Origin: Trichoplax adhaerens
Lineage: Eukaryota; Animalia; Placozoa
Assembly (NCBI RefSeq): GCF_000150275.1
Contig: NW_002060948.1
Location: forward strand, 4,228,759-4,292,758
DNA length: 64,000 nucleotides
Direction of reading: 5' to 3'
Shown here: one piece after another, positions 22,832 to 64,000 of the stretch
Numbering within the stretch: position 1 is the first letter of the stretch
Layout of the letters: each line of letters opens with the position of its first letter
Translations under genes and position numbers: made by a program
The notes under the pieces: generated by a model
The model's input: only the letters and a program-made list of their open reading frames with translations
The model's database searches: none
Told to the model about the DNA's origin: nothing

Positions 22832-24094
22832 TTAAGTATAATCTTGAACGCGTAGTAGGTCGTCCAGCTTTTGCCAATTTTTAGTTTTAAGTTGATAGAA
22901 GAATTCAGGCTGAAGAGCTCTATTTAAGGATTTAACCAAACGACTGGTATTAATTTTGGGTAAGCCACATTCAGCAAAGAAAAATTCCACATGTTCATTA
23001 GCTTTCGATGTGGTTAATCGTCTACCACGGCAATTTAAAAAGACGTAAGATTCATCTCCTTCAACTATTTTGGGTAAGCAACGCCTTACATAACGCCAAA
23101 AATTATAAAAGACCACTTTAGGATAGCCTGTTAAAGTAATATATATTGCGTTGTAGTCGTTAACATCGTGATCATATACCGTAATTGTGACTTCCTGATC
23201 TTGGTCTAGCCAATCGGTTTTAGCAGCTTCGATATCGTCAAAGGTCATATTACACAATGCAATCAATCTTGCTTTACACCAAATTAACACTTGAACAATC
23301 GTATAACGTAAAGCGAAAGTATAGCCTTGGTATTCAACAGACTGCCACCCTGGGGTAGGATTACATTTTAACGCCCATTTGGATATCATATCGTATCGTA
23401 GTCGATTATCACGACGATTAACTAGCTTAAATAGGGTAATTGGGTTCAAATAATAATCTCCTTTATCGGAAAGGCGAATTTCACGGCATCGCTTTTGCTT
23501 ATCGGATTTATAGGAATCTAATAAATTATTAACAATATCGTGTTCGCTTTGGTCTAATTGTTCAATCATTCCCATTTTAATGGCATATTCTCTTGCTCGT
23601 TTAAGACTGAAGACAATATTATAGATAGATGATGTAAAGAGCTTAACTTCATCTGTTAAGATACTTGCATATTTATTAATAAGCTGTGTATCTGCTAAAT
23701 ATTGCCAATTAAATTCTTGACCATTGGCACACCAATATAAGAAGCGATTGACAGAATTGGTTACTTTTTGACTATATGAGCGCTGCTTTCCATCAGCAAT
23801 GAGGTAATTAAAAAATTCATCCAACGATGAGCAATTATCATAGCGTTGATCAAGCCCAGAATCTTTTAAATTCTGATTCGCAACACTCCGACTTGGTCGA
23901 AAAGGAGTTCCTCGGACTTTATCTTGCCAATTACCAATTCTCATTTTATCTTTGATAGTCCGTTTTTCGCGAACAAATTCATTGTGATTTTGCAGTTGAT
24001 TCTCTTCGTCACTTTTATTATTTTTAACACAGTACTGGCTAGAAATGCTAGTGACTTGAATTGTGTCCGTCTCTAGCTTATTCTGCTGATTCAT
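22832..24094 (-). CDS. Tyrosine-recombinase/integrase-fold protein (Crypton-like), active site degenerate; main exon
   Basis: Core-binding-like helices (FFNYLIADGK...VNRFLYW; SSIYNIVFSLKRAREY). Box I-like KARLIALCNMTFDDI, then ITVYDH, YVFLNCRGRRL and box II-like INTSRLVKS. Confidence 0.75.
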   Translation of the reverse strand: MNQQNKLETDTIQVTSISSQYCVKNNKSDEENQLQNHNEFVREKRTIKDKMRIGNWQDKVRGTPFRPSRSVANQNLKDSGLDQRYDNCSSLDEFFNYLIADGKQRSYSQKVTNSVNRFLYWCANGQEFNWQYLADTQLINKYASILTDEVKLFTSSIYNIVFSLKRAREYAIKMGMIEQLDQSEHDIVNNLLDSYKSDKQKRCREIRLSDKGDYYLNPITLFKLVNRRDNRLRYDMISKWALKCNPTPGWQSVEYQGYTFALRYTIVQVLIWCKARLIALCNMTFDDIEAAKTDWLDQDQEVTITVYDHDVNDYNAIYITLTGYPKVVFYNFWRYVRRCLPKIVEGDESYVFLNCRGRRLTTSKANEHVEFFFAECGLPKINTSRLVKSLNRALQPEFFYQLKTKNWQKLDDLLRVQDYT

Positions 24095-27032: not shown

Positions 27033-27961
27033 TTAGTCGAAAGAAGATTTTACTGTTGAATTTCCTTGGCTGTTTTGGCTTTCTAAACGTTTTCGAATAG
27101 AAATTGGTCTTTGGTAGATGCTATTGTTACCAAAGCTACTTTTATAGGTATGGTTGTCGCTGTAAATAGGACTTGATGTTTGGTCTTGCGATAGTTTGGC
27201 TCTAACTGCATCGGGTGTTACTTTCTTATACGTAGAAGCTACACTATCAAGACTGGAATAACCATAATCTTCGTCATTTCTGTCCTCCTCCTTTATATTT
27301 GCCTTTGATTTTGACATTGATGTTAGAGTTCCATTTGAAAAACTAGCATTAATTATTCCATTAGTACTATTATCACTGGAAGTATCAGTTGTGCTAGAGT
27401 CGAATTCATCCGGTTGAAATTGAGAATCTTCGTCAATGGTGGTTAGTGCACCAGTATGGTCTAATTTAGCTCGGTCATGGGAAGACATGTGTGGGTTCAC
27501 TCTATCAATTTGTACCGCCGTCGATTTGGGCTGAGCATAGGATATGGATGTCTTGATAGAATTGCTTGGGATAGTAGAATAGACTTGGTGGATATCATCG
27601 TCCTCATCATCGTCTGTTTTTTTGATTTCTCCGTTTGATTCTGCTTTTTTCACACTATCAGCAATTTTTGCATTCATATAGGTACTATTATATGGACTAC
27701 TTTTGGTATCTCGACTTATGCTTGTGCTTACTGGATCATCGTTGCCTTCAAATGCTGGGTTTTGTCTACTACTAGCATGATTGCCCTTAAAGATTGGATT
27801 ATTGTTGAGGTTACTTATGTCCACCAATGGATGATCTAAAGACTGTTTTGATTTACTAACTACATATTTATTACGATAATAAATGAAGAGTAGTAAAACC
27901 GCGAAAGCTATTATTGCAGCTATTACACCAAGAGAAATGGCGACGAAAAAGAGTGGAGATA
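27033..27961 (-). CDS. Terminal exon of Jagged-like gene: TM helix and low-complexity cytoplasmic tail
   Basis: The acceptor at 27962-27963 opens [31 protein letters not shown], in frame with the 27033-27827 ORF. Confidence 0.9.
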
Positions 27962-30900
27962 CTTAAAAGTAAAAATGAATGTTATCGTTAAAAACAAGCT
28001 GTTTTAAAAATGTAATCAATGTCTAAATATATTACTAAAATGGCTACTTTCGTAAAAACGTTATTAAATATTTTAAAATGTGAATAATTCTAATTCGGAA
28101 AGAATTTTTGATTTACCTATGTTAACACGTGTGTCTGGAGATATTTGTAATCCTTGTATTTGGCCGCTACTTGTATCTAGGTGTTGTATTAATGCTTGCA
28201 TAGCCTTTTGTGCATCATCTGTGCTAGTATTTGTTTGCTATAAAGTAAGATTTTGTAAAATCGTAAATTATCTGACAGGTTTTAATTCACTGTACAATTT
28301 CATCAAAAATTGGACGATTTTTGTAATGACCGGACATATACGGGTTTAAAATACGAAATGATTTGCTAAATTAAATATTTGAGCGTTTGTAAAGAATATT
28401 TCTGACCTACATAACTGAAAAAACTTACTATAGCTAGGGCAATCCGAACGTCGGTGCCAATATTATCTGTTACATTACATTGCAAGACAAGGCTAGTATT
28501 TGTAGCATAATTTTTCAAAACCCGGACTCTTCTTAATCGATCACATATCTGGTTGATGGTAGTACCCTGGGAAAGAATTATCTTGATTAGAAACTTTTAA
28601 GTAAAATTGAGATATTCTTCTATTAGGTAGCTAATAAAGCTACTATTAAGACTAATCTTTGAAAGAATTATGGCTATTCGGTACCGTAATAAATGCTTCA
28701 TAAGTTAAATTATACTGTAAAAAGAAGTTGATTGCTCATTAAACAATAATTAAGTTCATAAATTACATTAGGTAATTTAGCTGGAGAGATTTGATGGATT
28801 TCTCGATAACAGTTCGATGGAGCAGTTCCTTGGTAGTTTAAGCAGCTAAGCCCATCTTCACTATTTTGGCAGTAGCTTTGTGCGACACATGGCGATTGTA
28901 GGCAATTAGATTCGCTGTAAGAGACGCAAGAACCACCATTTGTACAAGAAACACTTGCTGAACAATTGCTTGGACCACACCAAACCTAATAATTAAATTT
29001 ATCCAGTTTAGGCTTTTATTAATTTACAGTAATATAAGGGTATTCATCATCGATAAAGAAAATTAATTGGAGAAATCGTTATACCTGTGTGCAGGTTACT
29101 TGGCCGGATGAACAACTGCACTCATTGCAATCTGCCGGCCATTTAACACTATCTTGATAGACTATACCACCGTAGACGCAAATACCTAAGTGTAAATGTT
29201 TACAAGATAGAAATATGCGATAAGTTAGAATAGAGTTGATTAAATACTCATGTGAGATTGGTGTTAGGTAAGACAATACCATGAACTTTTTAATACATAC
29301 GTGTGCTGCAATGTTGTCCAGTCCAAGTGGTAGGGCAAGTGCATGTATAACGGTTGACTTGGTCAGTACATGTACCTCCATTTTGACAAGGATTCGATGA
29401 GCACTCATCGATTTCTAAAAATGTGCAGAGAAAAGCGATGAATCGTAACACAGTCTTTGCTAGTAATTTTAAAAATACAATCGAATGAAGAAATTAAGAA
29501 AGGGTTTTTTATTCTATATACTTTGATAACTTACGTTGCTTACATAGCGGACCAGTATAGCCAGCAGAGCAGTTGCATACATATCCGCCAATAAGACCAT
29601 TACAGCCTCCATTTGGTGAACAAATATTTTCGGATATGAGACTTCCAGAAGTGTCATAAACCTTACAGTAATCGATTCGAGAATCACATAATTGACCAGT
29701 ATAACCTAAGCCGCAATTACAAGTGTAGCCATTGACTTGATCAATGCAGGTAGCGCCATTTTTGCAAAGAGAACCGGCGCAATCATCGATATTAGTTTCG
29801 CAGATTGTGCCAGTATAGCCTGTATTATTGCAATTGCAAGAATAACTGTTGATCAGATCCAAACATATTCCTTGGTGCAAACATGGTGTAGAAGCACATT
29901 CATTAATGTTCACTTCGCAATTTGTTCCTGTATATCCGAATGAACACTGGCAGGAATATCCCGCAATTAGATCATTACATTGCCCGTTATTTTGGCACGG
30001 CTGGCTTTGACACTCATCAATATTAACTGTACAATTAGTGCCCGTATAACCAGACCTATAATAAATCGAGAGTTAAATTAATTGGCATTCATTAAGGTTT
30101 CATTGACAGCAGGAATAGAATTAGTTATTAACTAGGTATAAAGCGCTGTTAAAATATTTACCCGCAATTACACTTGTATCCATTTACTTGATCAACACAT
30201 TGACCATTATTAGCACAAGAATTCGGCTCACAATCATTTATGTCTACCGTACAAAATGTACCAGTATAACCAGGTAGGCAACTGCAACTATATCCATCAA
30301 CTTTATCTACACAAGTACTTCCGGATGCGCACTGATTACTTTGGCATTCATCGATGTTAACTCCACAGCTGGAACCAGTAAATCCTCTAGCACATACACA
30401 TTGATATTGGTTAACATTATTAAGACATGATCCGCCGTTTTGACATGGACCACTTTGGCATTCATCAATGTTAGTTTCACAGCTTTTGCCGGTATAACCA
30501 GGATTGCAACTGCAGGAGTAATTGCTAACTAAATCGGTACACGTGCCAAAGACGCAATTTCGTGGATCTTGACACTCGTTAATATCAACACCACAGTTAC
30601 TTCCGGTATATCCAGTGGTACAACTACATATAAATCCGTCTACTTGATCTATGCAACTGCCGTTGATACATGGATTGGAAGCACATTCATTAATGTTGGT
30701 TTCGCATAATTGTCCGGTAAATCCAATTCTACATCAACAGGAATAAGATCCGATTCTGTCTACACAAACTCCTCCACTAGTACAAGGTGAGCTACTGCAT
30801 TCATTGATTTCTGTTTCACAGTGAGTTCCAGTGTAGCCATTACATTGGCAGGTATAACCGTTCACTTGGTCATTGCATGTTCCACCGTGTTGACAAGGAG

Positions 30901-33900
30901 AAGATGTACATTCATTAATATTAACTTCACATCGGCTACCTTGATAGCCAGCAGGACAAGTACAGTTATATTCATTAATGCCATCGTTGCATGCACCAGT
31001 AGCGCAAGGATTGCTGCTACATTCGTTGATATTTGTTTGGCATTGATTTCCTGTAAATCCATTTTGACAGCTACATGAATAGCTATTAATATTGTTAGTA
31101 CATGCACCACCATTAGTGCAAGGGTTACTACTGCATTCATTAATATCGATCTGGCATGATGTACCAGTATAACCAGCAGAACAAGTACATTGATAGCCAT
31201 TGCGTAAGTCAGTACAATTTCCGTCATGTAAGCATGGCTTCCCTTCACAGTTGTCAACACATAGGAGGCCTTGCAGGTTATTTGGACATTTGCATTGAAA
31301 GCTATTTACGCCATCTGTACAGTTACCATCATTATGACAAGGATTAGGCGAGCAATCATCGATATTGTTTTGACAAGACGTACCATTAAAGCCTGCAATA
31401 CACTGACAGACATATTGATTGACTCGGTCGAAACAAGTACCATTATTAAGGCATGGGTTGCTGCTACATTCGTTAATATCTTGTTCACAATGCGTACCAG
31501 TATATCCATTAGCACAACTACAAGAATAGCTATTAATCTGTTCATTGCAGGTACTACCATGTTGGCATGGATCACTAGAGCATTCTGCGATATCAGACTG
31601 GCAAGTTTTACCGGTGTAACCAGCAATGCAATTGCAACTGAAATCATTGATTTGGTCTGTACAAGTACCGCCATGACTGCATGGTGTTGCAGCGCAATCA
31701 TTGATATTATTTTCGCAATTGGTACCGTTATAACCAGCAATGCAATAGCATTGATATGAATTAACTTCATCTTGGCAGGTGCCATTATGATTGCATGGGC
31801 CACTAGCACATTCATTGATGTTAGTTTCACAGTTTACATCCGTATAGCCGCTGGCACATGAACAGCTATAACTGTTGATAGCATCTTGACATGTTCCTCC
31901 TTTATAACCAACAATGATAATTAATAAAGTACGTAATTTGATGGAATAGGCATAATTACAGTGCACAGACTAACTTAGGTATATTCATACTATTCACACC
32001 AATAAACTGAAATTAATATACAATATTTACAACTAGCTATATTCTTTGAATAAACGTGTGCAACTTATACTCCATTATTGGTCTGTAATAGCTTTGCTAT
32101 AGCATAATTATCTGATGCGATACTTAGCATTAGTATATAATACTTTACCATGTCGGCATGGCGTTGATTGACATTCATTAATATTTACTTCGCAGTTTTT
32201 ACCAGTATACCCTCCCATACAAGTGCAGCGGTAGTCGTTGATTTGATCCGTACAGGTACCACCGTTAATACACGGGGTAGAATTACATTCATTGATGTTT
32301 ATTTGGCACGTTGTGCCGTTAAAACCAGCCTTGCATTGACAGCCAAATTGATTGATATCATCGATACAGGTACCATTATTCAAGCATGGTTGGCTAGTAC
32401 ATTCATTAATATTAGTTTGGCAGTTGATATTAGTAAATCCAGCTTGACAGGTACACTGATAGGCGCTAACAAGATCCTAAGTCGGAGAATATTGCAAAAT
32501 GAGGAATATGAGTAATTATAGTAATATACTGTACATTTGTGTATGTACACATAATACTTTTACCATTCCTTATGAGATTTTACCTGGCATGTGCCATTAT
32601 TTTGGCAAGGCTGAGGGCTACAATCATCGATATCTAGTATGAAGTAAGCAAAATTTATTTCAATAACCAAGTTTATACCTTAATTAAAAAGTGATATTAA
32701 TGTAAATACCATTGGCTTTAATTCAGTTACATACTTATTTGGCACATTTTTCCGGTATAGCCTTGGATGCAATTGCAGCGATAATCAAGCACTTGATCAA
32801 AGCATGTGCCGTTATTTTGGCATGGGGCTGCAGTGCAATCGTTTATATCTATATAAAAAATCATTTCATTTCAGAATATTATACAAACAACAATTTTAAA
32901 ATTATATATCCAGTATTTGGCATAAACTATTAGGGCCCATAGATGGTTGATTATACAATTGGGTAATTGTTAGTTGATAAACTGAATTGAATAGAGTAGA
33001 GGCTTACCATTTTGACAGTGGTATCCATTAAATCCTGTGTTATTACATATGCATGAATAACCGTTTATTCCATCTTGACAAGTTCCGCCATTCTGGCATG
33101 GATTTGATAAGCATTCATTAACGTTTATTTGGCATGTCGTGCCGTTGTAACCGGATGCACAGTTACAGCTATAGGAAGCGATCTGGTCTATACATGAGCC
33201 TCCATTGATGCATGGAGATGAAGAACATTCGTCAATATCTGCAAATGCGGTAGAGCAAATTGAAAATTAGAAAATATCGGATACTTTAATTTAGTAAAAG
33301 TATGTACGAATTACTTATTTCACAACTCTTTCCCGTGTAGCCGGCACTACATGTACAGCTATAATCGTTAACCCAATCCGAACAGTTTCCATTATGAAGA
33401 CACGGATTGCCAGCGCAGTCATCGATATCTGAAAATGTTATTAATAAAGCAATTTGCTTCAACCATACAAGTACTAGTATCAAATAGCAATTATATGACG
33501 CATAGTATACGAAAAAATATATCTATGGCAATAATAGGGAATAAGTCTTACTTGTTTCACAATGAGTTCCATTGAAACCAGTTGATGTGCAATTACATGA
33601 ATAACTATTTATACCATCGATGCACTGCCCACCATTTTTACATGGAGATGATAAACACTCATTAATATTGCTATTACAGTGGGTACCAGTATAACCGGCT
33701 GAACAGCTACAATTGTAACCATTGACTAAATCATTACACGATCCTTGGAAACATGGATTACTGGTACATTCATTGATATTGGTTTCACAATTGGTATCTG
33801 TATAGCCAGCTGTACATGTGCAGTTATAACGGTTAATTAAATCAATACAAGTTCCGTTATATTGGCATGGATTTGATGCACATTCATCAACATTCATTTC

Positions 33901-36900
33901 ACAATGAACGCCTTTATAACCAGACTGACATGAACAGTTATACATGTTAACCATATCTTTGCATACGCCATTATTCAAGCATGGTAAACTATTACATTCG
34001 TTGATATCTGTTTCACATTGATATCCAGTATAACCAGGTAAGCATGAACAATTATATTTATTAACATGATCATGACACTGACCACCGTTCAGGCAAGGCA
34101 GTGAATTGCATTCATTATAGTCAATTTGGCAGTTTGTTCCCAAAAATCCTGGCAAGCAAGTGCAGTTATATCGATTGACGAGATTGTGACAAGTAGCTTG
34201 ATTTTGGCAAGGATTACTATTGCATTCATCAATTTCTGTTTCACAATCGTATCCAGTATAGCCAGGTAAGCATGAACAGTCATATTGATCGATTAGATCG
34301 TTGCATATGCCATCATTTAAACATGGGCCACTTTCGCATTCGTTGATATTAGTTTGACATTCATTTCCTGCATAACCAGGTACGCAAGTACAATTATAGC
34401 CATTGATTAAATCTTGGCATGTTCCACCATTTTGACATGGACTGCTTATGCATTCATTAATATTAGTTTGACAGTCAGTTCCAGTAAATCCAGCGATGCA
34501 GTTACAGGAATATTTGTTAATTTGATTGACACATTCTCCATCGTTTTGGCATGGCATTGATAGACATTCATCAATATCTTGCTCACAATGTGTTCCCGTG
34601 TAGCCAGCAACACACTGACAATTATAACCGTTAATTGCATCAGCGCATGTAGCACTATTTTGACAAGGAGAGGAACTGCATTCATTAATGTCTTTTGCAC
34701 AAAAAAGAAACAAAGATATTAAGAAATTGCGTTACGCACTACTTAAATTAGGTATAGATCACTAAAATATATTAATATTAGACTCGGAACTAACTTATTG
34801 TGCACTGATCGCCTGTGAATCCAGATGCACAAGTACAATTATAATAGTTTGGTGCAGAGTTGATGCACGTAGCTTCATTATGACAGGGCGTGAATCTACA
34901 TCGATTAATATCTATATTTACAAAGTAAGAAGAGCAATCCAAATGATTAGTAACTCACTTACCGACGATCCACTAGGTAATTGTCGAATATAACAGAGTA
35001 GACAGTGCAATGTATGCTTGTATATATATATACTGTAGATTCTTACCATCTTGACAAATATTCCCAGAATAATCCGACGTACAATTGCAAGTAAATGAAT
35101 TTACTTTATCAATGCATACACCATTATTTAGACATGGCTGGACATGACATTCGTTAATATCTGTTTGCAGTACAAAAATATTTATACCTTAGTAGCTTTA
35201 TCATGTATTGATACTACACTAGGACCTATAATTTACAAAGTGTATTCGAATTTAGCATACAGTTTCCAATGGCTTTCTAATTGAAATCAGTAATTAAATT
35301 TTCGACTTACCATTTTCACAATTGGTACCGTTAAAGCCGGAACCGCAATTGCATCTGTATTGATTTGCACCAACATTGATACACGTACCACTGTTTTGGC
35401 ATGGTGTTATCCTGCATCGATTATGATCTATAAGGTTGATAGTTATATACGGTAAAGAAAATCTTAGCATAATATTTTTCCTTGTTAAAGTCAATATTCT
35501 TTAGCTAAAAGACGTATGATACAAACAGAAAATTAATAAGACAATTGACTCTTTGGTATCTTTATTTATCATTAGGATCCTTACATGAGATATTCTACTA
35601 TGCTTTACACGTTCAACTTACCGTGTTCACAAAGTGTTCCATTATAATCTTGTGTACAAACACAAACATATCCATTTATCGAATCACTACAGCTTGCATT
35701 GTTACTGCATGGGCTAGAAACGCATTCGTCGATATCTGTAGTACGAACATTGATTGGAGGGTTAGAAATAAATTTACGCGCTGGTAATGCAGAGACAGCG
35801 GCTAGCTACAATAGACATGAGGTATTGATTACTTGTTTCGCAATGAATTCCTGTGAATCCAGCAGCACAGCTGCAGTTAAAAGTATCAGGGAAGATATTG
35901 GAACAGGTAGCGCTGTTTAAACATGGCTCTAGGCGGCATCGATTATTATCTGTAGCAAAATAGGAAATTATAAAAAGTTATTTACACCGATAAATTTAAG
36001 CTAACTTATTTTACGTCAATTAGAGTATATGAATTCTATTTTGAAAATTATTATAATCCTTAGGCCTTAATAATCGCAAATATATGGAATAGATAACATT
36101 TTACATACCATATTGGCAATTAGAACCACTAAAATTGGTTTTGCAAACGCAGTCGTTACCCAAGACACAATTTCCATTAGCTGTGCAATGGTTAATAAGA
36201 AATATATGTATGACAGTCAATGATAATATCTTTATAGCTAAAGAAGATCAATTCTACCACTAGATTAATTTATTTTTTACCTGTACATCCCTCTTTGATC
36301 ACACACTGCATGCAGGTGTTTCCTGTCCAACCACTATTGCATCTATTTGGTTTGAAGTAAAATTTCATTATAAATACACAGGGAAACATAATCTTTTGGA
36401 CAATTATTTTTAAGACAATTTATGAAGCTACTGAAAGTTTTTTGGAAAGAATTTAATATTTTTAACCAACTTACAAACACTCTCCTGGCGCATTTGTACA
36501 ATTGGCATGAGATAAATCGCAGCCATCCCTACATATAGCTTTAACAAAAAGTATATACGTATACAATAAGTCATTTTATTTAAATGAAATAGTAATTGCT
36601 GTAATTCCATTTTTTAAAAGCTTCATTTAGTTTTAAAATCATTATAAGTTTGTTTGGATAATCAAAATTACCAGTATCGCAGGTTTTTCCTGTCCAACCC
36701 GTAGTGCAAGAACAGTTATAATGGTTAATCATGTCATTACAAGTAGCATTATTTAAGCATGGATTGGAGGAACATTCATTGATTTCTGTCAAAGATATGT
36801 TGAAAAATGTATTGGTTACTTCATTAATCACAGTTACATCAGAGCTTATGCGATAGTTAATAGTTGTAATATCCAAATATTGCTTTGTAAGTATTTTAAC

Positions 36901-39900
36901 CAGTTGCGTTGAAATGCAATAACTAAATAAGTTGAATGACTGACTACTCGGTGTAAAGTTTAATTAATTTGTTAATGGTTGTATTAACAGACCTGTTTCG
37001 CAATTATTTCTAGTATATCCTGGAACACAACTGCAAGTATAATTATTAACTCCATTATTATTGCATGTGGCGCCGTTACTACAAGGGTTGCTTCTGCAAG
37101 AATTTAGGTCTGTAAAACGATATTAAAAACGCTTACCATGGGGTACATTGAAAAAATGGAATTTTAATTCTGTTTATAGAAGAAACAGTATATCGAAAAT
37201 CATAATAGATGGAAAGATCAATGGTACTTGTAATATCCTACTTACCATTTTGACAGTTTACACCTGTATAATTAGCCATACAAGCACAGCTGTATGCATA
37301 TGGTGTGGTATAAGAACAATTTCCACCATTTGTACATGGAGGCGCTATTCTACAAGGGTTCATGTCTACAAAATATGTATAAATTAAGTTCTTTAGCTGG
37401 ATCGGAAATAAAATTAAACTTAAAGTACACGAAACAAAATTTATAGCTGTTAATGACAAAAATTATGAGTCTATTAGCGCTTAATCATGAAACTTCTAAA
37501 TATCTATAAATTTGAAAGCTGGCTTATATATCGTAGATCACGTTTTCATTTACGGCGTACATGGCAAAGTAATCCCGTTTTTGAGGAACATTTTATCTGA
37601 TAATCCTGACACTAGTGTGATAGTAGCAGCAGTATTTGCTGTCATTTATTTAACGCTGCAGTTGCATTTTAATAATGGTACCCTACCTTGTTCGCAATGA
37701 ACCCCTGTATACTGCGTTGGACATTGGCATGTATATCTATTGATTTGATCGATACATGTTGCTTGTATATGTTGGCAAGGATTGGATGCACATTCATCGA
37801 TATCTTTGAGTACAAACAAATATAAAAATAAAATCGTATTATTCAATGATCAATGATAAAAATCTTTTAAACATCTCAAGTAGAATTAAGCTAAATTACT
37901 TTGTTCACAAGTTATGCCAGTATATCCAGCTGCACAATTACATATGAAAGAATTAGCCCCATTATTGATGCAAGTGCTGTTGTATTTGCAAGGAGAGCTG
38001 CGACAGCTATTTAAATCTGTAAAAAGTATATAAGTTGGATCCAGTGGAATAAAAGAGTATGTATTTAAATTTATTTAGTGGCACCTGCATAAATGCATTT
38101 AATTACTAAAATGCATCTCAATCCAACATACCATTTTTACAGTTATTTCCAGAGTAATTGGCTGCACACGTACACGTATAAGTGTCAATACCTGTGGCTG
38201 AACATGTACCGCCATTCTGACATAAGCTGCTGTTTTTTCGACAAGCATTTCCATCTTGTGAGAGTAACCGCAGTATAAGTTAATTAAAATGAGAAATTAC
38301 TATCTCTGTATGCTTAAATTACAATAGATGCTCAACGAAATACGACTAAATAATTTATATCAAGTTTAAGATTTCTATACCGGTTTCGCAATGATTTCCA
38401 GTCCAGTCAAATAGACAATTACAAACATAGAAGCTGACTTGATCTTGGCATGTACCACCATTTTGGCATGGATTTGAAGAACACTCATTTATATCTATAA
38501 GAGAGTTATGGACGTAGAATATTAATTTATCCTGAAATTAGGAACTAATTGATTTTAATTTCTAATTATCAGAGATCTTACTTATTTGGCAGTTAGTGCC
38601 AGTATATCCGGTAGCACAGCTACATGCATAGTTATTAACGTTATCTGTACAGCTACCACCATTCTGACATGGGGTTGATTGGCATTCGTTGATATCTATG
38701 TGATTATATACCAACAAAAGGATTATATAAAAATGAGACGGAAATTAAGTCTATAAACTATTGCAATTTCATTAAAATGTAACAGATTGTTCTGTGTTAA
38801 AGAACGCTTATTTGTTGACAAAATCTGTAAAACCTTGTTACAATATAATCAGATTATTTATATTCAGCTTATTATAATAAAAGATGTAACGAATCTAACC
38901 TTGATCACAATTGGTTCCTGTATAACCAGGAGCACATGTACAAGAATAAGTAAATACTCCTGTAGCAGCACATGTAGCTCCGTTTTTACAAGGTGCACTT
39001 ATGCGACATTTATTAGCGTCTAAAGAATAAATAAATAAATGTTAATATAGATCCTCGTTAAGATAACTTGTAACAAGTTGTAATTATCGGTTCAGTATTA
39101 GTTACACTGTCATAATCAGTTAAGTAACGAATTACCAGTTTCGCAATGTGTACCAGTCCAATCAGAAGGACAATTGCATGTATATCCGTTTATTCCATCA
39201 ACACATGTAGCATGGGTATGCTGACATGGATTCGATGCGCATTCGTCAATGTCTAGCATTAAATAGGTAATATCAAGTCGTGTAAGAAATGGTTAAGCTG
39301 ATCTTAATTATATAAGTTTTACTTGTGGTACAGATAGCTCCAGTATATCCAGCTGCACACGTGCAATTATAATAAAGATGGTAATCGTTGCATGTTGCTC
39401 CGTTAAGGCAAGGTGTAGAGGCACATTCAGCAACATCTACAAAAGAATTAGATAAAAGTTAGACGATAAATTAGGGTAATAAAGTTACAGCAATTTCATT
39501 ACAATGTAACAGTTTTTCTTAGCTATAGAACGCTTATTTGTTAACAAAAACTGTAATAAATATTATATTGCTTTCGTAAGTCTACATTTAAACTGGTCGA
39601 AATGTTTACCTAATGCACAGTTTGATCCGGTATAACCGGATGTACAAGTGCATGTATAGTCATTAATACCATCTGTACAAGTTGATGAGTGTTGACAGGG
39701 ATTTGATGAACATTCATCAATGTCTATAAATAGCAAAATAAATTGAAATTATTGACTTCAATTTCCTTACATAAAATTGGAAAAAGATAAGTTTTAAAGG
39801 AAGAATGTGGCTCAAATAATTTCTGTCTTATGCAAATTTCTCTCAATTTGACTGAACGAACAAATATTTTAGAGTTTAATATAAATTTACTTGTTCCGCA

Positions 39901-42900
39901 TTGGGTTCCAGTATATCCTGCAGCACATATACAATTGTATTTATTAACCAAGTTATCACAGGTTGCACCATTTAAGCACGGAGTCGATATGCATTCATTG
40001 ACATCTAAATCATTCAATTTCGACATAAGAGTTTAGCAAGTGTAGGCTAATATCTCAAATTTTACAGCATGATACGAGTGAAAAACATATGAAGAATACG
40101 TGCATGGTTACCTTGATCACAATTTATTCCTGTATATCCTGGCGCACAAGTACATGTGTAAACGTTGAGGCTAACATAAGAACAAGTACCTCCGTTCTGA
40201 CATGGTGAAGATAATCGGCATAAATTGCCATCTGGTGTAAATGAAAACAATGTTATTCATTAATTATTTTATCCAGTACACAGTACAATTTAGAATTATA
40301 TGTCATTAATTATCTTGATACAATTCATTATATATATATAGTTAAGTATTCAGAATTGATGATAGATACCAGTTTCACAATGAGCTCCTGTCCAATCAGA
40401 AGGACAATTGCAAGTGTAACTATTTACACCATCAACACATGTAGAGTAAGCATGTTGACATGGATTCGATACACATTCGTCGATATCTATCATGTAGTTT
40501 AATTAGATAGAGTAGATTAAGGGTAAGTAAATACCTCAAATACTATCAGCCAGCCTCAAGAATATATTTACGTATAATAGACACTATATTGCAGTCGAGG
40601 CTACTTTGAAAGCTGAATTTAATTAAGTAAAGTTTACTTGTGCTGCAGATCGCTCCTGTATATCCGGCTGCACATGTGCAATTATAGTAGAGATGATAGT
40701 CGTGGCATGTTGCTCCGTTAAGGCAAGGTATAGAGGTACATTCTGCAAAATCTACAAAAGCATTTTATAAAATTAGACGGAAATTAAGTCTATAAACTAT
40801 TGCAATTTCATTAAAATGTAACAGATTGTTCTGTGTTAAAGAACGCTTATTTGTTGACAAATTTTGTAAAATCTTGTTACAACAGAATCAGATTATTTAT
40901 ATTCAGCTTATTATAATAAAAGATGTAACGAATCTAACCTTGATCACAATTGGTTCCTGTATAACCAGGAGCACATGTACAAGAATAAGTAAATACTCCT
41001 GTAGCAGCACATGTAGCTCCGTTTTTACAAGGTGCACTTATGCGACATTTATTAGCGTCTAAAGAATAAATAAATAAATGTTAATATAGATCCACGTTAC
41101 GATAACTTGTAACAAGTTGTGATTATCGGTTCAGTATTAGTTACACTGTCATAATCAGTTAAGTAACGAATTACCAGTTTCGCAATGTGTACCAGTCCAA
41201 TCAGAAGGACAATTGCATGTATATCCGTTTATTCCATCAACACATGTAGCATGGGTATGCTGACATGGATTCGATGCACATTCGTCAATGTCTAGCATTA
41301 AATAGGTAAATATCGAGTCGTGTAAGAAATGGTTAAGTTGATCTTAATTATATAAGTTTTACTTGTGGTACAGATAGCTCCAGTATATCCAGCTGCACAC
41401 GTGCAATTATAATAAAGATGGTAATCGTTGCATGTTGCTCCGTTAAGGCAAGGTGTAGAGGCACATTCAGCAACATCTACAAAAGAATTAGATAAAAATT
41501 AGACGATAAATTAGAGTAATAAAGTTACAGCAATTTCATTACAATGTAACAGTTTTTCTTAGCTAAAGAACGCTTATTTGTTAACAAAAACTGTATAATC
41601 CTATTACAACATAATCAAATTGTTTATATTGATTTTATTATTAAGGATGATATAAAGAAAACAAACCTTGATCGCAATTGGTTCCTGTATAACCGGAAGT
41701 ACAAGTGCATTTATATGTGCTTACTCCTGTGGCAGCACATGTTGCTCCATTTTTACAAGGTGCACTTCTGCGACATTCATTAGCATCTAAAGAATAAATA
41801 AATGTTATTATAGATTATATTTACGTTCAATTTTAACAAATGGAGTTTATATTGGCTTAGCGTTAATCAAACTGTCATACTAAGTTAAACAACAAATTAC
41901 CAATGTCGCAATGTGTGCCAGTCCAGTCAGAAGGACACTGGCACGTATATCCATTTATTCCATCAAGACATGTAGCATAGACATGCTGGCATGGACTGGA
42001 TGCACATTCATTAATATCTGGTATTAAATTTGCAAATATTAAGTCTTTCAGCTTATATTTAAAAGCAATCGTCTATTGCAATGAGGTGTATTTAAAGTTT
42101 GAGAATAATGATCGAAACAGGATATTAACATACTTGAACTACAATCTGATCCGGTATAGCCATTAGCACAACTGCATGTATAACTGTTGACACCATCGAC
42201 ACAAGTTCCACCATTTTGGCAAGTTATACTGGCACAATCATCAATATCTAAGGATGACAGAGATGAAAACGATACATATGTAAGTGTTTTCTTTAATTTT
42301 TGCTTAAAATATCTTTTGTAACGAGTTGGATTCAGAATTCTATCGCAAGTGTATTTAAGCCATGGTATATTCTTCTAGAGAAAAATTCTTATGGAATTAT
42401 TTGCAAGCTAAGTATATTATGAACGATATGTTTCTATCTTTAATTGTGTATATTAAACCGCAATATATATGCAGATCTAATTACATATGTGAATATTTTC
42501 ACTTTATCTAATTAATAACTTTGGTTTCTTACTAGATGCGCAAGTTGATCCAGTAAAGCCAGTTTCACATGCACAAGTATAAGTATTGATTCCAGTATAG
42601 GTACATGTGCCGCTATTTTGACAAGGAGTACTCGATCGACAAAGATTTCCATCTATTTTTGTAGGAATGTAGATGAGACGTTATACTAAGTATGAATTAT
42701 TGTAAAACAGCAATTTGTTATTTAATTAATCAAATCATCTAAAGCTTATTGCAGAAATCCATTCTGACAAGGTATAAATTAATTATCCGTAGATTAAGAA
42801 TCTTACCGGTTTCACAGTTAGTCCCAGTCCATTCTTTGGGGCAGGTACAGGAATACGAATTGACGTTGTTATGACAAGTTGCATAAACATGTTGGCATGG

Positions 42901-45469
42901 ATTAGATGCACACTCGTTAATGTCTATAGTTAAAAAGTAAATATTGTAGTTAGTACGTATGAATCCAATTTCTTCCAGAGTCGGCATTTTATTATATGCG
43001 TTATAAAACAATTATTAGACTACTAGGCGATTAAAGTTACGCGTACATTCTTTATCGTAAGATAATAGTAGAAATCTTATAGTTAGTTTACGATATACCT
43101 GTTTGACAGTTTGTGCCAGTGTAGCCTGTCACGCAGGAACAAGTGTAAGCATTTGCCCCATTATTTGCACATGTGCCACCATTCTGACAGGGGGTACTAC
43201 GACAGCTATTTAAATCTAATTAAATTAAAACAAATAGTTCTTTAATAAGTATATAAGTTCATGAATTTAATACAGGCATGTATTTCGTTAATATATAGCT
43301 AAAACTGTCTTTTCGAATATCAATTAGGAACAAGGAATACCTTGAAAAAGTGATGGTTCAATTAATGCAAAAATTAAATTATATTTATAGGAACGCTTAA
43401 ACTCGAAGTTTACTTGCACTTAGAACTGCGTTTATCTGGTTAAATGTATTTAATATCTTAGATATCGTATTTATTTGAATATTATCAGATTTATAGATGC
43501 AACTCGTGCAAGTAATGGCGTATTCCTACCGGTGTTACAATCTGTCCCAGACCATGTACTTTCACAAGTAACAGAAACCTTTAATGTAAATTCGGATTTA
43601 TTATCAGTGATGGGCCGAGAACCAGTCATGGTGATTGTTGATGAAGATCCAGGTATAACATAAAATGTGCTTGAAAGTTTGTCAAGTAAGTCGTCAGCAC
43701 CATCACTATAATCTTTATCCATAGATGTAATATGTACATTGACATAGCCCTAAAGCAAAGATCTTTGTTACTCCAAAACAAATTGATAATCCAAAATAAC
43801 TTTAAGTTACATTTTTAAACACTTACTTCGTATCGTTCACTGATTGAACCTTGATAAGGATTATTTACGCCACTATCTGTTAGCGCTTGACTACTTGTGA
43901 AAGTTATAGTTTCACCGCCATCCCATACTTTAGTAGTTAGAGAACCATAAGTACATGCATCATTGATATTGCCTTTATTACTGCATAAAATGAAGTAATA
44001 GTTGCATGAAGAGAAAGTATCGCATTTGCCATTATCCCAGTTGCGTTCATTCTTGTTGTAATATTTTTGAAATTCGTAAGTGACGTAAGCATGAACATCA
44101 GCTTCAACGTACTGTAATTATTTGGAAAGGTGAGAAGAAAATATTAGGTGCTTTTACTTAAATAATCGATAATTACCGATTTTGGCACAGATACATTTAT
44201 TTAAATCCGTAGTCGATATAAATAACTAAACAAGGAATTATCAGAATTACTATGCTATCTTCAGTAAAGATAGTCTTCATGATCACAATATTGTCAACAG
44301 TTCATTGTTAATGTAAAAGACATAAGCGGAAAAGGAAAAGTTTAATATAGCAATACACAGCCGCCCCTTCTGTTACAAGGCAGTGTTGATCATGGCTGTG
44401 CTACGTTTTGAAACTATAAAGTTGAAGGTTAGGCAGTTGGGCATTATGAAAATTACATTATTAATCTTTAATTTGATGGAAATGTGTTGCATTTTTACTG
44501 CATTAGTAAAGAAAGGACTACTTGTAAGAAGAATTTTAATCTATGATTTGTAATGCAAATTCTCCCATAGTACTTCAACTTCTAACCTTTAAGCTTTTGA
44601 CCTATGAAGTTAAAAATTACTTGATTCTTTTATATTATGATACTGTGGAATTCTAACGTATAATTGTGGGTGTATAATATGTGATATTAATACTGTATTA
44701 TTAAAAGCACGTTGTCGTCGATGATGAATTTGAGTGCGAGAAAGGAATTTATTTATCTTAATACATTCTCATCCTAAAATCTGATGAAATTGATGTAGAT
44801 GTCAACATCGGGTGAAATCATGTATCTTATTGTATCTGGTATGATTGTTACCGTGATGATGAGTGTCATATCGGGCAATTGAAGCATGAATTTTTATTAT
44901 CTTTTCAGTAGGCGTATGATATTATCTATGTCTTAAAAAGTAATCATTCTAAGAAGTGCATTTGAATACGCTTCAGCGATAATAAGTAACAATCGATAAT
45001 GCATGATATTACTTTAATTTCTAATCTGAGTTGAAGTTAGTAGATAGCATGTTTTAAAGCAGCCGTAATAACATAAAGGAACTACAACATCTGGCAATTG
45101 CTTATCAATTAAAATTGTAAACGATGTTATGATACTAAAGGCATAGTATCACTTCCAATAAAGATAGAGAGTAAGTTTAAGTAATTTAAAATTTAGAATA
45201 ATGATTTTAATCCTATCAATATAATATAGGAAATTTACCAAAAATTTTCAATTATTTGGCTAACATCTGTTACTCATTAAGGTATTTTATAATAAGATAG
45301 TAGAAGCTGATATGTTATACATATATATAAGCTATGCTACATTGGGCTAAAGAAAAATATGTACGCCTTCATGCACTAGAATGTTCAGTCATATTTATTA
45401 AATTACCTGTAAATTAGATAGCGCTAGAACAGCTATTAATAGTAATAACTTGATATTGAGATGGATCAT
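27033..45469 (-). CDS. Giant Jagged/Serrate-like type I membrane protein: SP - C2/MNNL - collapsed DSL - 25 EGF - DOS - ~43 EGF - VWC - Jagged-type juxtamembrane domain - TM - cytoplasmic tail; one in-frame TGA
   Basis: About 50 GT-AG exons, with consistent phases at the junctions checked. About 70 EGF repeats counted by hand, many with Ca-binding DINEC, O-glucose (CxSxPC) and O-fucose (CxxxxTC) consensus. The C-terminal ectodomain is colinear with Jagged (DCNECSC...VWCGP...[12 protein letters not shown]). No LNR or ankyrin repeats. Confidence 0.88.
28117..29185 (-). CDS. VWC and Jagged-type juxtamembrane domain exons
   Basis: Exons 29185-29085 ([32 protein letters not shown]), 28985-28767 (VWCGPSNC...), 28566-28429 ([14 protein letters not shown]...) and 28237-28117. 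Phases join. Confidence 0.88.
36109..36538 (-). CDS. DOS motif (the two atypical EGF repeats of Delta/Serrate ligands), three small exons
   Basis: Exons 36538-36475, 36342-36281 and 36180-36109 give [66 protein letters not shown], matching the Jagged EGF1-2 cysteine pattern. Confidence 0.85.
38736..39555. repeat. Intragenic direct repeat, copy 1 (~820 bp, three EGF exons plus introns)
   Basis: Near-identical to 40775-41595 (offset 2039-2040), introns included. The ORF track shows twin shadow ORFs at 38787 and 40826. Confidence 0.95.
40775..41595. repeat. Intragenic direct repeat, copy 2
   Basis: Near-identical to 38736-39555. Confidence 0.95.
43530..44111 (-). CDS. C2/MNNL domain exons plus residual DSL loop
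   Basis: Exon 44111-43827: [43 protein letters not shown]...[10 protein letters not shown]...NNPY. Exon 43749-43530 ends [18 protein letters not shown]. Confidence 0.85.
45407..45469 (-). CDS. First coding exon (signal peptide) of Jagged-like gene
   Basis: [21 protein letters not shown] followed by a CAG|GTAATT donor in phase 0, matching the phase-0 acceptor at 44111. Likely cleavage after VEA. Confidence 0.75.
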
Positions 45470-48954: not shown

Positions 48955-50533
48955 TTATCATTTTGCAAAATTGCGATAAAAATATCATACACGAACTTTG
49001 ATTCGTTATAGAACTTTAAGATATTGCGTAAATTGCGTAAATTGGTTTTCTTGCAAAACAGATTATTATACGCCTTCATTTAAAATTATTCAACTTATAT
49101 TTAAATCTACGATTTAAGCAGTTAGTTACAGGCTTACTTTTAGCTCAATCCCACCTTGAAAGTTAAGTCGTAATGTGTATCAGAGCTAAAAATTACTATT
49201 GCACGATTTATCAATAACTACCATAGCACCTCTAATTAAACTATCGCGGTAGTTCTACTCTGTACTAAATTACTTTTCACAATCTATTAATATCTCATAA
49301 CCCTAAAGTAAGTAATGTACTACTGTAAAGTGGTAACAATGCGTACCACAGTGGCGTAATCTACTAAATAATACTTGCACAATCTTATAATGTAATATGC
49401 AATTTGAAATACTTTCCCGCCATCCTACGACTATAACGGCATTGCTATTTCAGCGGCTACACTACAAGTTGTCCTTGTTTTGAAATTTAATTTTGTTTAA
49501 ATGTCAGTGAAATCTATCAATATACGTCTAGAGTTCGTTGATTAATTTGACTTTGTTAGATCAAAATGCTACGTTAGATTATCTTGTGGTTTTTTATAAC
49601 ATGATGATATTAAGCTATATCAACAGTTTTAATAAATTAGTTGGCGCTCTAGATGTTGGGCTGATATAAAAATGTTAATCCTAAAGAGGTTTAGATGATG
49701 CATAATAGAGATGATTCCAAAATGTTGAATATTTTATGCCAAAATTGACTTTCAAATCGACAGTGTATAAGAGTAATCTTTATGATGTTCATATTAATTA
49801 TGAGTGGACTAATGACGATTTTCAGGTCATATTTGTCTTGAAACAGAACTTTCGATATCGCGAAAGAAATTTTCTGTGGCAATATTAGCCTGCACAGTTG
49901 TTGTAGTAAATCGACTCATGAATACCAAAGTATTATTCCAATATTACTCAATTAAATATTGATTAATCTTAGTCTTTGCCTGCCCAGCAAACATTCACTT
50001 GAAATAATAGCAAATAACATTTTATGTCAGTCGTATTTTACTGCATAATGCTGCTGTAGTATACCAGTAAATTAGTCTAAGATTACGATTGCTAGAATGC
50101 AATACTTAATTGGCAAAATATGATCGCGTTGAGGAAAAATCATTCTGTGACTGATTGTAAAAAACGATGAAATTACTGTTATAATTTACTTGATAATCTG
50201 ATAGTAGCTAACTAGTTCTTGGTAGTGGTAAGTTGAATCGAATATTCGTAATAAAGGCAAAGTTTACTAGAGAGTTTAGTTCTTGCTACAATATTTTTGA
50301 GAAGATATTTCATTATAGCTGCTCATAACAGGTTGATATGTGCGTATATTAATATAGGATATTCTCGCGTACGAGTACTTATTATAAGGGTTTGTTGATT
50401 CGAGAAAAGTTGAGTTACCAGCCCTTTAGATTAGCACATATGCAATAAAGGTTATATTATTCAAAGGCTTGTAAATGATTGATTGTAGTAAAGCTAAGAA
50501 GCGTAACTATCATTTTATGGCATAATTGTATAC

Positions 50534-53500
50534 CAATTTCGCAGTGCGTTCCAGACCAATCACTAGGGCAGTTGCAGCGATATCCATTTTTTTCATTTGA
50601 ACAGTTAGCATTTATATGTTGACATGGATTTGACTGGCATTCATGCGAATTTTGATATATAGAAAGCAAAATGGTATAATACTTAATTGTTTGTGGGATG
50701 ATGAAAGATTATATCATGACCAGAGCAAGAACTACGCTTAAATACGTATTAATTAATATTTACCTTCAGTACAATTTTTATCCTATGTAGACAGATAAGC
50801 TGCTGCAGTTATATGAAAACGGACTAGTCCATAGGTACAATGCTCCATTTTGGCACGAAGAATATTTTCAGCATGGATTTAAGTCTAATCGATTTAATCA
50901 ATTATTAGGTTAATTTTTATAAATAAGATAGGCATAATGAAATAATATAGATATGCTATATAAATGACTTATACTAGTAAAAGATTTTTTAAATAAAAAA
51001 GCTATAGAATGATGCTCAATCCAAAGCAGTAGTAAAAACCATATTTCAAGTATTATGATTTACTTATACATGCCAATTTCGCTGTGTATTCCAGACCAGT
51101 TAGGAGGGCGTTTACAACGATATCCATATATTTAATCAATACAACTAGCTTTCATATGGCGACGCGGATTCGAATAATATTCATTCATATCTGTATGAAA
51201 TTTTATGCATTTCAAGTTCACTTCTGTTTACTAAAATCTATACTATCATTGACTCGCCACTAATTATAATTCTTAAATAACCCATAAGTGATGTTCTGTT
51301 ATTGATTATTATTAATCTATGGAAATATTAGTTTATTTTAAGAATTTATTAGTATTGCCCATTACATAAATTTATTAGTTATGTTTTCCTAGCTAAGTAT
51401 TTTCCAGTATATCCTTCTAGACAAGGACAGCTGCAACTGTTGTGTAAATAGTGGTAGCTACCATTATTTGTGCAAGAATGGGAAAGAAATTCATCAATTT
51501 CTTTTAAAAGTATAACTATATTTTTAGCTGAAATAATTTACACAGCTTGATAAGAATCTGAAACTTTTAAGTCCTTTTGATAAGTTACTAAATGAAGTAC
51601 GAGTTCTATAAGTTGATGGCATTCTTAAAGTTATTTGTAGTATTTTTTCGATTGACATTGATCTGCTAATAATTCTAGCACATAGATGAGGCATACCTTC
51701 GGTACAATTTTTTCGTATATATCCAGCAAAGCAGTTGCAGTAGTATGATAATGGGCCAGTCCATGAGCGTGATGCTTCTATTTTACAAGGGAAGGGCTTT
51801 CGGCATGGATTAATGTCTTATCGAATAAATGGATTATGATATAATTTTTGTTTATTATATAAAGGTAATGTAAAATGTTACTTTTATGTTATAATATAAG
51901 ATTTGCTCAAAAAAAGATTAAATTAGGCAAAAATGAAAAATACTATCCTATCTGAAGTACTTTTAAAAGTGATAATTAAAGTGTTGAGATTATGTATTAA
52001 CCGATTTCGTAAAGTGTTCCAGACCTGTCCGGAGGGCAGCTACAGCGATATCCATTTATTTCGTCGGTACAGGTATCATTTACATGTTGAAAGGGATTGG
52101 ATTGACATTTATTTATATCGAAGAGAAATTACATATGTGATTTGTTACTGTTGAACTCTTAAATTGCAAACAGATAAATATTTTTCGGAAATAAAGACAT
52201 ACAGCTATTTTATCTACTATACTATAGCATAATTTAACCAACAGAATTTCCTATCTATCAGTTGTAATTTATATGTTATCATCCGTTGTCTAACCTATTA
52301 GGCAACTTGTTCCAGTATAACCTGCTCAACAGGAGCAGTTATGTAACTGTTGAGTAATTCGTAACAGCTTTCATTATTCACGCACGGCTAGGGAAGACAT
52401 TCGTTGATTTCTAAATTGAATAAATTATCAGCCCAATTGCAAGTTACGAGTGTATTATAGCATAATTGTAAATTATAAAATTATGACCTAACAGGGTTAT
52501 GAGTTAAATATCTTCAAAATAATTTTTGAATTTACTAAGTCATTTTGTTCATTTCTACGTAATAATATGTGTTTATTGTCATTGCAGTATACTAAGATGC
52601 CGTGGTGTGAGTATATTCGTGCTATTATACGCTAATATACTTTAATTTTCAGATAATGCATACCTTTGGTACAATTTTTTCCTGTATATCCACTTGAGCA
52701 ATTGCAATTATATGACATTGGTCCAGTCCACAGGCATGCTCCGTTTTGCCAAGGTGCATGAGTTCGGCAAAGATTCAAGTCTTATAATTTGAATTCGAAT
52801 GAATTTAATTTAATTACGAGGTCAAATAAGCAAAGGCTATTAACGATTAGAATGCTTAGAATAGTTGATATAATTTGTTTTCGTCGTCACTATAAGCATA
52901 GTATGTTAGCTATATTATTAAATGATGTAAAACCATTAAATAGTGTTTTAAAAAGCTGGGGAAGAAATTAAGACCAATTTTTCATACCAATATCGCAATG
53001 AGTTCCTGTCCAGTCAGAGGGGTAGTTAGATTGATATCCATTTACCTGATCAATGCAGGTGGCTTTTTTATTCTGACATGGACTGGAGTAGCTCATTAAT
53101 ATTTGCGCATTAAATGTTTTTAAAATGCATTAATCTCTTTCACAATGTTACCGGAAAATAAATTTATTTTCTTTCAATTCCCGTTCTATGGTATTGATTA
53201 TTACAGAATATTTGTAAAAATTTTTAATTACCAGTACTGAACAGATACTGCAGTATATTAAAATTTAAGATAACTTTAAGTAATTAAGGCTGATGATTTA
53301 ATTTAATTTAGTTTAATTTGCTGGTTTGGCAATTCGTTCCGTTATAGCCTGTTAAACATAAGCATTTGTAGCTGAGATGGAGATCAAGGCAGGTTCCATT
53401 AATAGCTCAAAGCTTGGGCAAACAGTCATCGATTTCTAAGGTTTGAAATCAGAAGGCATTATTTGTTGGTAAATGCCTGATATGCCTTTGGGTTGCGTTG

Positions 53501-63999: not shown

Positions 64000-64000
64000 G

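Follow-up and report, generated by a model that had tools for sequence, protein, structure and literature searches.

Within a 64,000-nucleotide stretch of the Trichoplax adhaerens genome (hereafter the window; part of contig C1409, AT-rich at about 31% GC, and the source of all coordinates unless another sequence is named), we analyzed a long gene on the minus strand that resembles the Notch ligand Jagged in most of its domains and departs from it where a ligand would contact Notch. In our reading, the locus holds a single gene that looks intact and is both transcribed and spliced. Its product is predicted to be a type I membrane protein within the Delta/Serrate/Jagged superfamily, and its architecture places it in a derived, Jagged-like family that lacks the DSL core and has expanded its EGF repeats. 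We put this identity, structure and family reading, taken jointly, at a probability of roughly three in four.

The protein would begin with a signal peptide and a C2 (MNNL) domain, followed by a 10-residue cysteine loop that replaces DSL, 25 EGFs and DOS-type EGF1-2. After DOS would come 43 EGFs, a VWC domain with a cysteine-rich region, a Jagged-type juxtamembrane domain, a transmembrane (TM) segment and a cytoplasmic tail. An initial annotation had assigned positions 36109-44111 to a Jagged-like ligand with a dismantled Notch-binding module. The Jagged-type C-terminus that it described does exist, only outside that interval, at 29185-27033 and after the 43 further EGFs.

Gene model, transcript and domains

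The coding sequence runs from 45469 to 27033, ATG to stop, with phases that agree at all exon junctions, and the sum of exon lengths gives a product of ~3,350 amino acids. An EGF pattern scan combined with splice sites and phases counted ~70 EGFs in total. Exactly 25 matches of the pattern fall between 43204 and 36679 (outer exon limits 43215 and 36672); together with the splice and phase scan, they confirm the proposed array of 25 one-exon repeats. The recognizable DOS motif expected behind the array was also found, encoded by three exons (Table 1). The signal peptide and the single TM segment, both read from the sequence by eye, would give the product its type I membrane layout.

At the position of DSL, exon B carries one loop, which the initial annotation had located correctly to the base, and ends two residues past the second cysteine of this loop, in phase 1. 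The six-cysteine DSL pattern occurs in none of the six frames of the window; the same pattern recovers the one canonical DSL of the genome. A genome-wide scan with Pfam DSL at E≤10 (105.6 Mb in 1,414 contigs) likewise gave no match within the window, so the reported absence of the DSL core held in both searches. We also searched introns 43529-43216 and 36671-36539 for a hidden DSL exon and found no cysteine-rich frame there. The only strong DSL match in the genome scores 71 bits and lies on contig C1403 beside a 105-bit MNNL match, which together mark the canonical Delta; weak DSL matches elsewhere (L002-L007) were rejected as MEGF/laminin-type EGFs. By the usual marks of a DSL ligand, the gene thus has a single C-x8-C loop where the domain should be, and its C2-DSL-EGF1-3 module is not contiguous, since 25 EGF exons separate exon B from the first DOS exon.

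We further examined whether the two parts of this gene are joined in RNA, using Logan contigs aligned to one 6,000-letter stretch (35820-41819). Four runs from three studies supplied the contigs; runs X10 and X15 are recorded as RNA-Seq, and X8 and X11 are guessed to be RNA. Each of the four yielded a long contig (3.0, 7.6, 7.7 and 8.4 kb), and the GT..AG joints coincide exactly with the predicted splice sites. These joints connect EGF23-24-25 (37109/37246 and 36785/36993), EGF25 to DOS1 (36538/36672), DOS1-2-3 (36342/36475 and 36180/36281) and DOS3 to the next EGF (35949/36109), with contigs across EGF25-DOS1-next EGF reaching at least 99% identity. Within the array, further joints were read at 37803/37900, 39723/39891, 40004/40112, 40231/40370 and 40486/40638. 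Word depth was ~85 in exons (X10) and 2-11 for a few unspliced intron pieces, although contigs do not quantify expression. The 8.4-kb contig extends ~8.0 kb past exon 38254-38132, which equals the summed downstream exons plus a short untranslated region, and at 7.6-8.4 kb the longer contigs could span EGF19 through the 3' end. One spliced RNA thus carries the array, DOS and the Jagged-type 3' part. Two ambiguous joints (39019/41175 and 41291 to 39323) are explained by the internal 843-bp duplicate of the array.

All searches were made exon by exon, without joining the spliced protein. Exon A matches Pfam MNNL at 18.5 bits (E=0.0015; cut-off 22.5) and the first VWC exon matches Pfam VWC at 26.6 bits (25.3 bits in the genome scan; cut-off 27.6), so that, among the profiles suggested by the initial annotation, MNNL and VWC gave matches, both under their cut-offs, and DSL gave none. 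MNNL matched five of the seven family exon-A sequences that were scanned, two of them above the cut-off (23.1 and 31.6 bits). We then built a hidden Markov model from ten family exon-A sequences, leaving the canonical Delta out; its best match in the PDB was the ectodomain of Drosophila Delta (7alk, E=1.4e-5), over the N-terminal 100 residues. These similarities argue for an N-terminal C2 (MNNL) domain in the studied gene.

The putative Jagged-type domain was recognized through exon 28566-28429, which matches Pfam PF23575 (jagged-1-like, predicted ferredoxin-like) at 26.2 bits (E=9.5e-6; cut-off 27) over profile positions 18-68 of 110. We attribute the sub-threshold scores of C2, VWC and this domain to the fact that each is split between exons. 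PF23575 matches only two places in the genome scan, each just downstream of a VWC match, and the juxtamembrane exon of a paralog scores 20.6 bits. The VWC and cysteine-rich region stands after the EGFs, as in Jagged, and is a module shared with three paralogs. Pfam recognized neither the cysteine-rich exon nor the tail nor the exon with the second juxtamembrane half, and ESM Atlas look-ups with the juxtamembrane and cysteine-rich exons returned nothing usable. Close to the membrane, an NPx[F/Y]-like motif recurs in the tails of three paralogs (NPIF and NPAF in the studied gene, NPLY in L037), a hint that the protein may undergo adaptor-mediated endocytosis.

Exon signature, the putative DSL remnant and the EGF array

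The canonical Delta of the same genome provides the reference for reading this gene structure. There, the C-terminal half of C2 and the entire DSL occupy one exon that ends ...CLPGWKGKFCEE plus one base, two residues beyond Cys6 and in phase 1. Its next exon, IECPEGCIEGGHGACIVPNKC, comprises 21 amino acids with four half-cystines and a phase-2 end, and the following exon closes EGF2 in phase 1. All three intron positions and phases are identical in the studied gene, which has one additional phase-1 intron within EGF2. A truncated four-half-cystine EGF exon followed by a phase 2/phase 1-flanked exon has been described for JAG1, JAG2, DLL1, DLL4, DLK1 and DLK2 (112 genes; Pintar et al., PMC2725086), and our DOS exon 1 matches JAG1 exon 5 in position and phase (PMC2725086). 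DOS-type EGF1-2 with this out-of-phase exon structure is therefore present in the studied gene. DOS exon 2 is 70-80% identical to its copies in paralogs and 53% identical to that of the canonical Delta.

Because these intron positions and phases are shared, the 25 EGF exons occupy what was ancestrally a phase-1 intron between the DSL and EGF1 exons. The array EGFs alternate between an EGF3-like type and calcium-binding types, which are the same types as after DOS. This suggests that the array arose by intragenic exon duplication, in which copies of the gene's own EGF3-type and calcium-binding EGF exons would have filled the symmetric intron. The consensus sites for O-glucose (C-x-S-x-P/A-C), O-fucose (C2-x4-S/T-C3) and calcium binding are common in both EGF blocks.

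The initial annotation proposed that DSL had collapsed between its first and last loops. In the canonical Delta, these two loops share the pattern C-x3-aromatic-x-G-x2-C (CDRHYYGPGC and CLPGWKGKFC), and a deletion of the core between such look-alikes would leave exactly one loop, preceded by the residues that lead into loop 1 (...V-x-C) and closed by the exon end that follows loop 3. The idea fits because exon B ends exactly where the DSL exon of the canonical Delta ends; it is consistent with the gene structure, from which we infer it. A profile of exon B gave only a non-significant match to DLL4 in the PDB (E=0.62), with the loop aligning alike to the first DSL, last DSL and EGF1 loops of DLL4, none of them significantly.

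A compact paralog on contig C1411, L021, separates the two changes that the initial annotation had combined under dismantling. Here, exon B (...FQYQCDSNWTGQYCES, then the base g) is followed by a 400-nt intron and then by AVCAPDCNLSHAHCNNKPGQC, CNDYWKGPNCSECVKAIDCS and ENGMCVNGGDCVCKANWGGKKC, so that the loop stands next to DOS and no array intervenes. The studied gene shows both a lost DSL core and an inserted array, and L021 indicates that these were separate events. From its sequence, L021 appears to be the cleanest natural version of a Notch ligand minus the DSL core.

Table 1. Coordinates of the studied gene and of its relatives in the T. adhaerens genome (window positions unless a contig is given)
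Feature	Position	Strand	Remarks
First coding exon, signal peptide	45407..45469	-	ATG at 45469; phase-0 GTAATT donor, fits exon A
Exon A, N-terminal half of C2 (MNNL)	43827..44111	-	Pfam MNNL, family profile
Exon B, C-terminal half of C2 and single loop	43530..43749	-	Phase-1 GT donor; kept in paralogs and in contigs of other samples
Lone disulfide-type loop in DSL position	43537..43566	-	10 residues; cysteines 43566-43564 and 43539-43537
Array of 25 EGF repeats	36672..43215	-	One per exon, AG acceptor/GT donor, all phase 1-1
Internal 843-bp tandem duplicate	38714..39555	-	97.7% identical to 40754-41595; EGF15-17 copy EGF7-9
DOS exon 1	36475..36538	-	21 amino acids, truncated EGF1, four half-cystines; phase 1 in, phase 2 out
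DOS exon 2	36281..36342	-	End of EGF1 and start of EGF2
DOS exon 3	36109..36180	-	Remainder of EGF2; ends in phase 1
43 more EGF repeats (EGF28-70)	29301..35949	-	Some in large multi-EGF exons
In-frame TGA	30734..30736	-	At x of C-x-C of EGF60, within an otherwise open 1.8-kb exon
VWC, first half	29085..29185	-	Pfam VWC
Cysteine-rich continuation	28767..28985	-	Starts VWCGPSNC; conserved in three paralogs
Jagged-type juxtamembrane (ferredoxin-like) domain	28117..28566	-	Two exons, 28566-28429 and 28237-28117
TM segment and ~270-amino-acid cytoplasmic tail	27036..27961	-	Stop 27033-27035
Decayed copy	50500..58526	-	Exon A 58526-58248 (54% identical); partial exon B 58174-58055, keeping ...VSVECASNWTG
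Copy 2 (L014, L023)	C1409:4304000-4311000		35.6 kb upstream, beyond the high end of the window; exon B match 99% identical
Copy 3	104 kb upstream		C2 exons ~55% identical
Four members	C1409:1.83-1.90 Mb		From match coordinates and 3-kb loci
Compact paralog L021	C1411:2315300-2317600 (2315867)		C2 exons, loop, DOS1-3, EGF3-like exon, no array

Paralogs and related sequences

A search with exon B showed that C2 exons are combined with this lone loop at no fewer than nine loci of the genome, and in every listed family member exon B closes with one C-x3-[W/Y/F]-x-G-x2-C loop and a phase-1 donor. Most members go on to an array of phase 1-1 EGF exons, which lies in the phase-1 intron separating the former DSL exon from that of EGF1. 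The initial annotation had called the gene a non-canonical Serrate-family protein. Its C2, DOS and VWC domains, together with the putative Jagged-type one, support membership in the superfamily, while the picture of a singular dismantled ligand gives way to that of a family.

The closest relative is copy 2, in which a 5.6-kb block with both C2 exons and EGF1 to ~EGF14 is 95.5% identical to window 39644-45214; a counterpart of the signal-peptide exon with 83% identity precedes this near-identical paralog. Between the two genes, exon identity is 97.8% and intron identity 95.7%, which leaves too few differences for a ratio of non-synonymous to synonymous substitution (dN/dS). The DOS exons and later EGFs of copy 2 are only 75-80% identical, and its 5' third looks like the product of a recent gene conversion or segmental duplication. 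Across copies 2 and 3, the DOS1 and DOS2 exons are 75-85% identical, and the number of EGFs between exon B and DOS1 is 25 in the studied gene, 21 in copy 2 and 24 in copy 3. The decayed copy still has ~15 EGF-like exons (55810-50541), many with lost cysteines or stops, and is probably a pseudogene between two live paralogs. Farther away on C1409, the member at 1903233 has DOS2 4.7 kb downstream and VWC 17 kb downstream, with the Jagged-type domain directly after VWC. Four loci in all carry VWC, the cysteine-rich 'WCG' exon, the juxtamembrane domain and TM.

A very divergent exon-B-like piece (…FLVSCVNVFSGSRC, 26% identical) lies at ~123145-122948 of the extended sequence, on the minus strand, and suggests at least one more family member in the tandem cluster. 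Two further long EGF arrays occupy 97900-108100 and 119700-123200 of the same sequence (L025-L027, minus). At the high end of the window, positions 62437-64000 (minus), continuing to ~68500 in L022, encode calcium-binding EGFs of fibrillin/nidogen style (C-x-x-x-x-N-C ... G-S-Y-x-C-x-C ... G-N-G), unlike the Jagged-like type, which may be the 3' part of an upstream paralog or a separate gene. An open reading frame of 420 amino acids at 22832-24094 (minus) has no significant Pfam match.

We next asked whether the family exists beyond this genome. A phmmer search with exon B against 1.84 billion representative proteins, a set from which records of this genome may be missing, returned no annotated full-length protein and five exon-sized open reading frames of 40-54% identity, all with the single loop followed by intron-like text; two other matches (P0001 and P0005) were rejected as repeat artefacts. 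The related contigs are AT-rich and stem from five other public samples, namely two metagenome assemblies and three other runs. EGF exons follow exon B on four of the six; L034 also has exon A in front, L031 ends at exon B and L035 is without exon A. Contig L012 follows copy 3 in the same order through exon B and four or more EGF exons, with ~70% nucleotide identity. The architecture is thus conserved between diverged lineages, presumably other placozoans.

Function, alternative readings and relation to Jagged

Notch EGF8-12 lie along a contiguous ligand surface made of C2, DSL and EGF1-3, and the C3-C4 loop of DSL provides key Notch contacts. As the C3-C4 loop is gone and C2 stands ~25 EGFs away from DOS, the product would have no contiguous C2-DSL-EGF1-3 surface, which points to a DSL-independent role; the protein is probably not a classical trans-activating ligand. 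Instead, the long, glycosylatable EGF stalk would hold out, well away from the membrane, a C2 tip that binds lipids or partners, and would serve recognition or adhesion between cells or between a cell and its environment. Any effect on Notch would be modulatory and exerted through DOS. We give about even odds to this functional reading of a Notch-independent or marginally Notch-related receptor. Tandem duplication, apparent gene conversion in the 5' third, the internal repeat, one decayed copy and an array of varying length give this family the birth-and-death dynamics typical of recognition families.

Several observations weigh against this picture or limit it. The Pfam scores of C2, VWC and the JAG1-type domain all lie slightly under the curated cut-offs, and C2 was assigned from searches of separate exons rather than of the joined protein. 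The TGA at 30734-30736 would, if it is a true truncation, cut the protein before VWC and TM; an error in the assembly and an allele of the strain are the other candidates. Where 31-mers are repeated, Logan contigs may be chimeras, and the two back-joints noted above are of this kind. The junction from exon B to EGF1 (43530 to 43215) falls outside the stretch covered by RNA and rests on splice sites, phase and conservation among paralogs and in other species. Finally, the adhesion or recognition role is read from the architecture.

A different function would be modulation of Notch, with DOS-type EGF1-2, with or without C2, binding the receptor as a cis-inhibitor or as a DOS co-ligand in the manner of DLK1, DLL3 or OSM-11. 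In DOS EGF1 both the C-x-C-xxGWxG-xx-C signature and the exon layout specific to ligands are intact, C2 is kept and conserved across paralogs, and L021 retains both DOS tryptophans beside its loop. Against this, the second DOS tryptophan is replaced by F in DOS exon 3 of the studied gene, the canonical Delta of the genome has a DOS of its own, so that a separate co-ligand is unneeded, and duplication, conversion and decay suit a recognition family better than a dosage-sensitive regulator; we regard modulation as possible, if doubtful. The array could also be a regulated cassette whose skipping yields a compact C2-loop-DOS minor isoform as the signalling form. Its 25 exons are all phase 1-1 between phase-1 introns of exon B and DOS1, and a direct exon B-DOS1 junction would read ...CNT/AIC..., with the spacing of Delta (...CEE/IEC...) and L021 (...CES/AVC...). 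Yet the RNA joints in 35820-41819, a stretch without exon B, connect neighbours only, barring the repeat ambiguities, and array length is roughly conserved among paralogs (25, 21 and 24 EGFs), which makes this reading rather unlikely.

That the gene is broken in the sequenced strain, with translation ending in EGF60 to give a secreted C2-EGF protein or a dying gene, would agree with a TGA inside an open 1.8-kb exon and with the clear decay of a neighbouring family copy. We find it improbable: the six cysteines are kept in all ~70 EGFs, the downstream exons keep their frames and splice sites, the abundant RNA contigs could reach the 3' end, which speaks against strong nonsense-mediated decay, and a one-base assembly error would account for the TGA. 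Nor does the single loop look primitive. The initial annotation had offered a relic of ligand assembly, that is, a pre-DSL stage of exon shuffling in an early-branching animal; Gazave et al. (2009) regarded the EGF and VWC combination of Trichoplax as a possible Jagged intermediate (PMC2770060), and DSL has been argued to be younger than short EGF repeats (PMC2725086). The same genome nevertheless has a canonical Delta with C2, DSL and DOS, as do sponges according to the literature, and family members end exon B exactly where the DSL exon ends. Moreover, the intron signature is of the derived JAG1/DLL/DLK type and the array copies the gene's own post-DOS EGFs. Since other animals have DSL in Jagged as well as in Delta, losing it is a more parsimonious account than gaining it twice, and a relic is very improbable. 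The least credible alternative is an artefact, either two genes (C2-EGF and DOS-to-TM) or a misassembly, for which the near-identical duplicates (the 5.6-kb block 35 kb upstream and the 843-bp repeat) would offer the opportunity. The EGF25-DOS1 intron measures only 133 nt, the spliced contigs of three studies cross it, and the same architecture recurs in a paralog with ~55%-identical C2 exons and in other species. Where the array meets DOS, the RNA joints exclude a pair of separate genes as well as a misassembly, and on them we rejected the artefact.

We are left with a Jagged-like gene without the DSL core as the preferred reading, and known ligands can be set beside it. With Jagged/Serrate (for example human JAG1), it shares C2/MNNL, DOS-type EGF1-2 with family-specific exons, tandem EGFs, many of calcium-binding type, VWC followed by a 'VWCGP' cysteine-rich stretch and a single TM, and it has a putative PF23575-type domain that scores just under the threshold. 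It differs in having a DSL cut down to a single loop, 25 EGFs interposed between C2 and DOS, ~70 EGFs in total rather than 16, an unrelated tail and a place in a multi-copy, tandemly duplicating family. The canonical Delta (C1403, L001 and L009) has in common with it the phase-1 exon that joins half of C2 to the cysteine-loop region and the exon ends of EGF1a and EGF2, and is set apart by a full six-cysteine DSL, a strong MNNL match, DOS without a preceding array, and a contig on which neither VWC nor the JAG1-type domain finds a match. DLL3, a divergent Delta-like ligand of mammals that is not known to trans-activate Notch, is small, has no VWC or inserted EGF array and shows no family expansion, so that its likeness would be one of functional analogy. 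This likeness consists in a kept MNNL/C2 with an absent or degenerate DSL, as stated in one survey (PMC12166595). DLK1 and DLK2, which share the exon-6 signature (PMC2725086), and the OSM-11 family of C. elegans have DOS-type EGFs and no DSL, and are short and without C2, VWC or a Jagged-type juxtamembrane domain; with its C2 and ~70 EGFs, the studied gene falls outside this class of DSL-less DOS co-ligands, to which the initial annotation had considered assigning it.

Earlier surveys may have met this family in part. Gazave et al. (2009) reported a complete Delta in Trichoplax, no Jagged, and a VWC with 7 EGFs that never occurred with DSL and was seen as a possible intermediate toward Jagged (PMC2770060). 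That 'EGF+VWC' gene is probably the studied gene or a paralog, described at the time as 7 EGFs and VWC only, with no link to C2, DOS or a juxtamembrane domain. A 2025 survey did not find Jagged outside cnidarians and bilaterians (PMC12166595); both surveys left the EGF+VWC pairing of Trichoplax as an oddity without explanation. Our full-text literature search found no account of C2-bearing, DSL-less ligand-like genes in placozoans. The EGF+VWC module is now tied to a ligand C2, a DOS intron signature and a putative Jagged-type domain in one gene.

We tentatively suggest, at somewhat less than even confidence, that placozoans possess Jagged-type genes, that these were missed in surveys because their DSL core is lost, and that Jagged is older than the divergence between placozoans and the lineage of cnidarians and bilaterians. 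Reused independently of DSL, the Jagged scaffold would then have become a set of rapidly duplicating giant surface receptors without DSL-Notch contact. If this orthology is true, the origin of Jagged moves one node earlier, and selection would be able to maintain the remaining ligand scaffold without DSL. The compact paralog and the paralogs with 21-25 EGFs represent natural domain-deletion and spacer-insertion variants of that scaffold.

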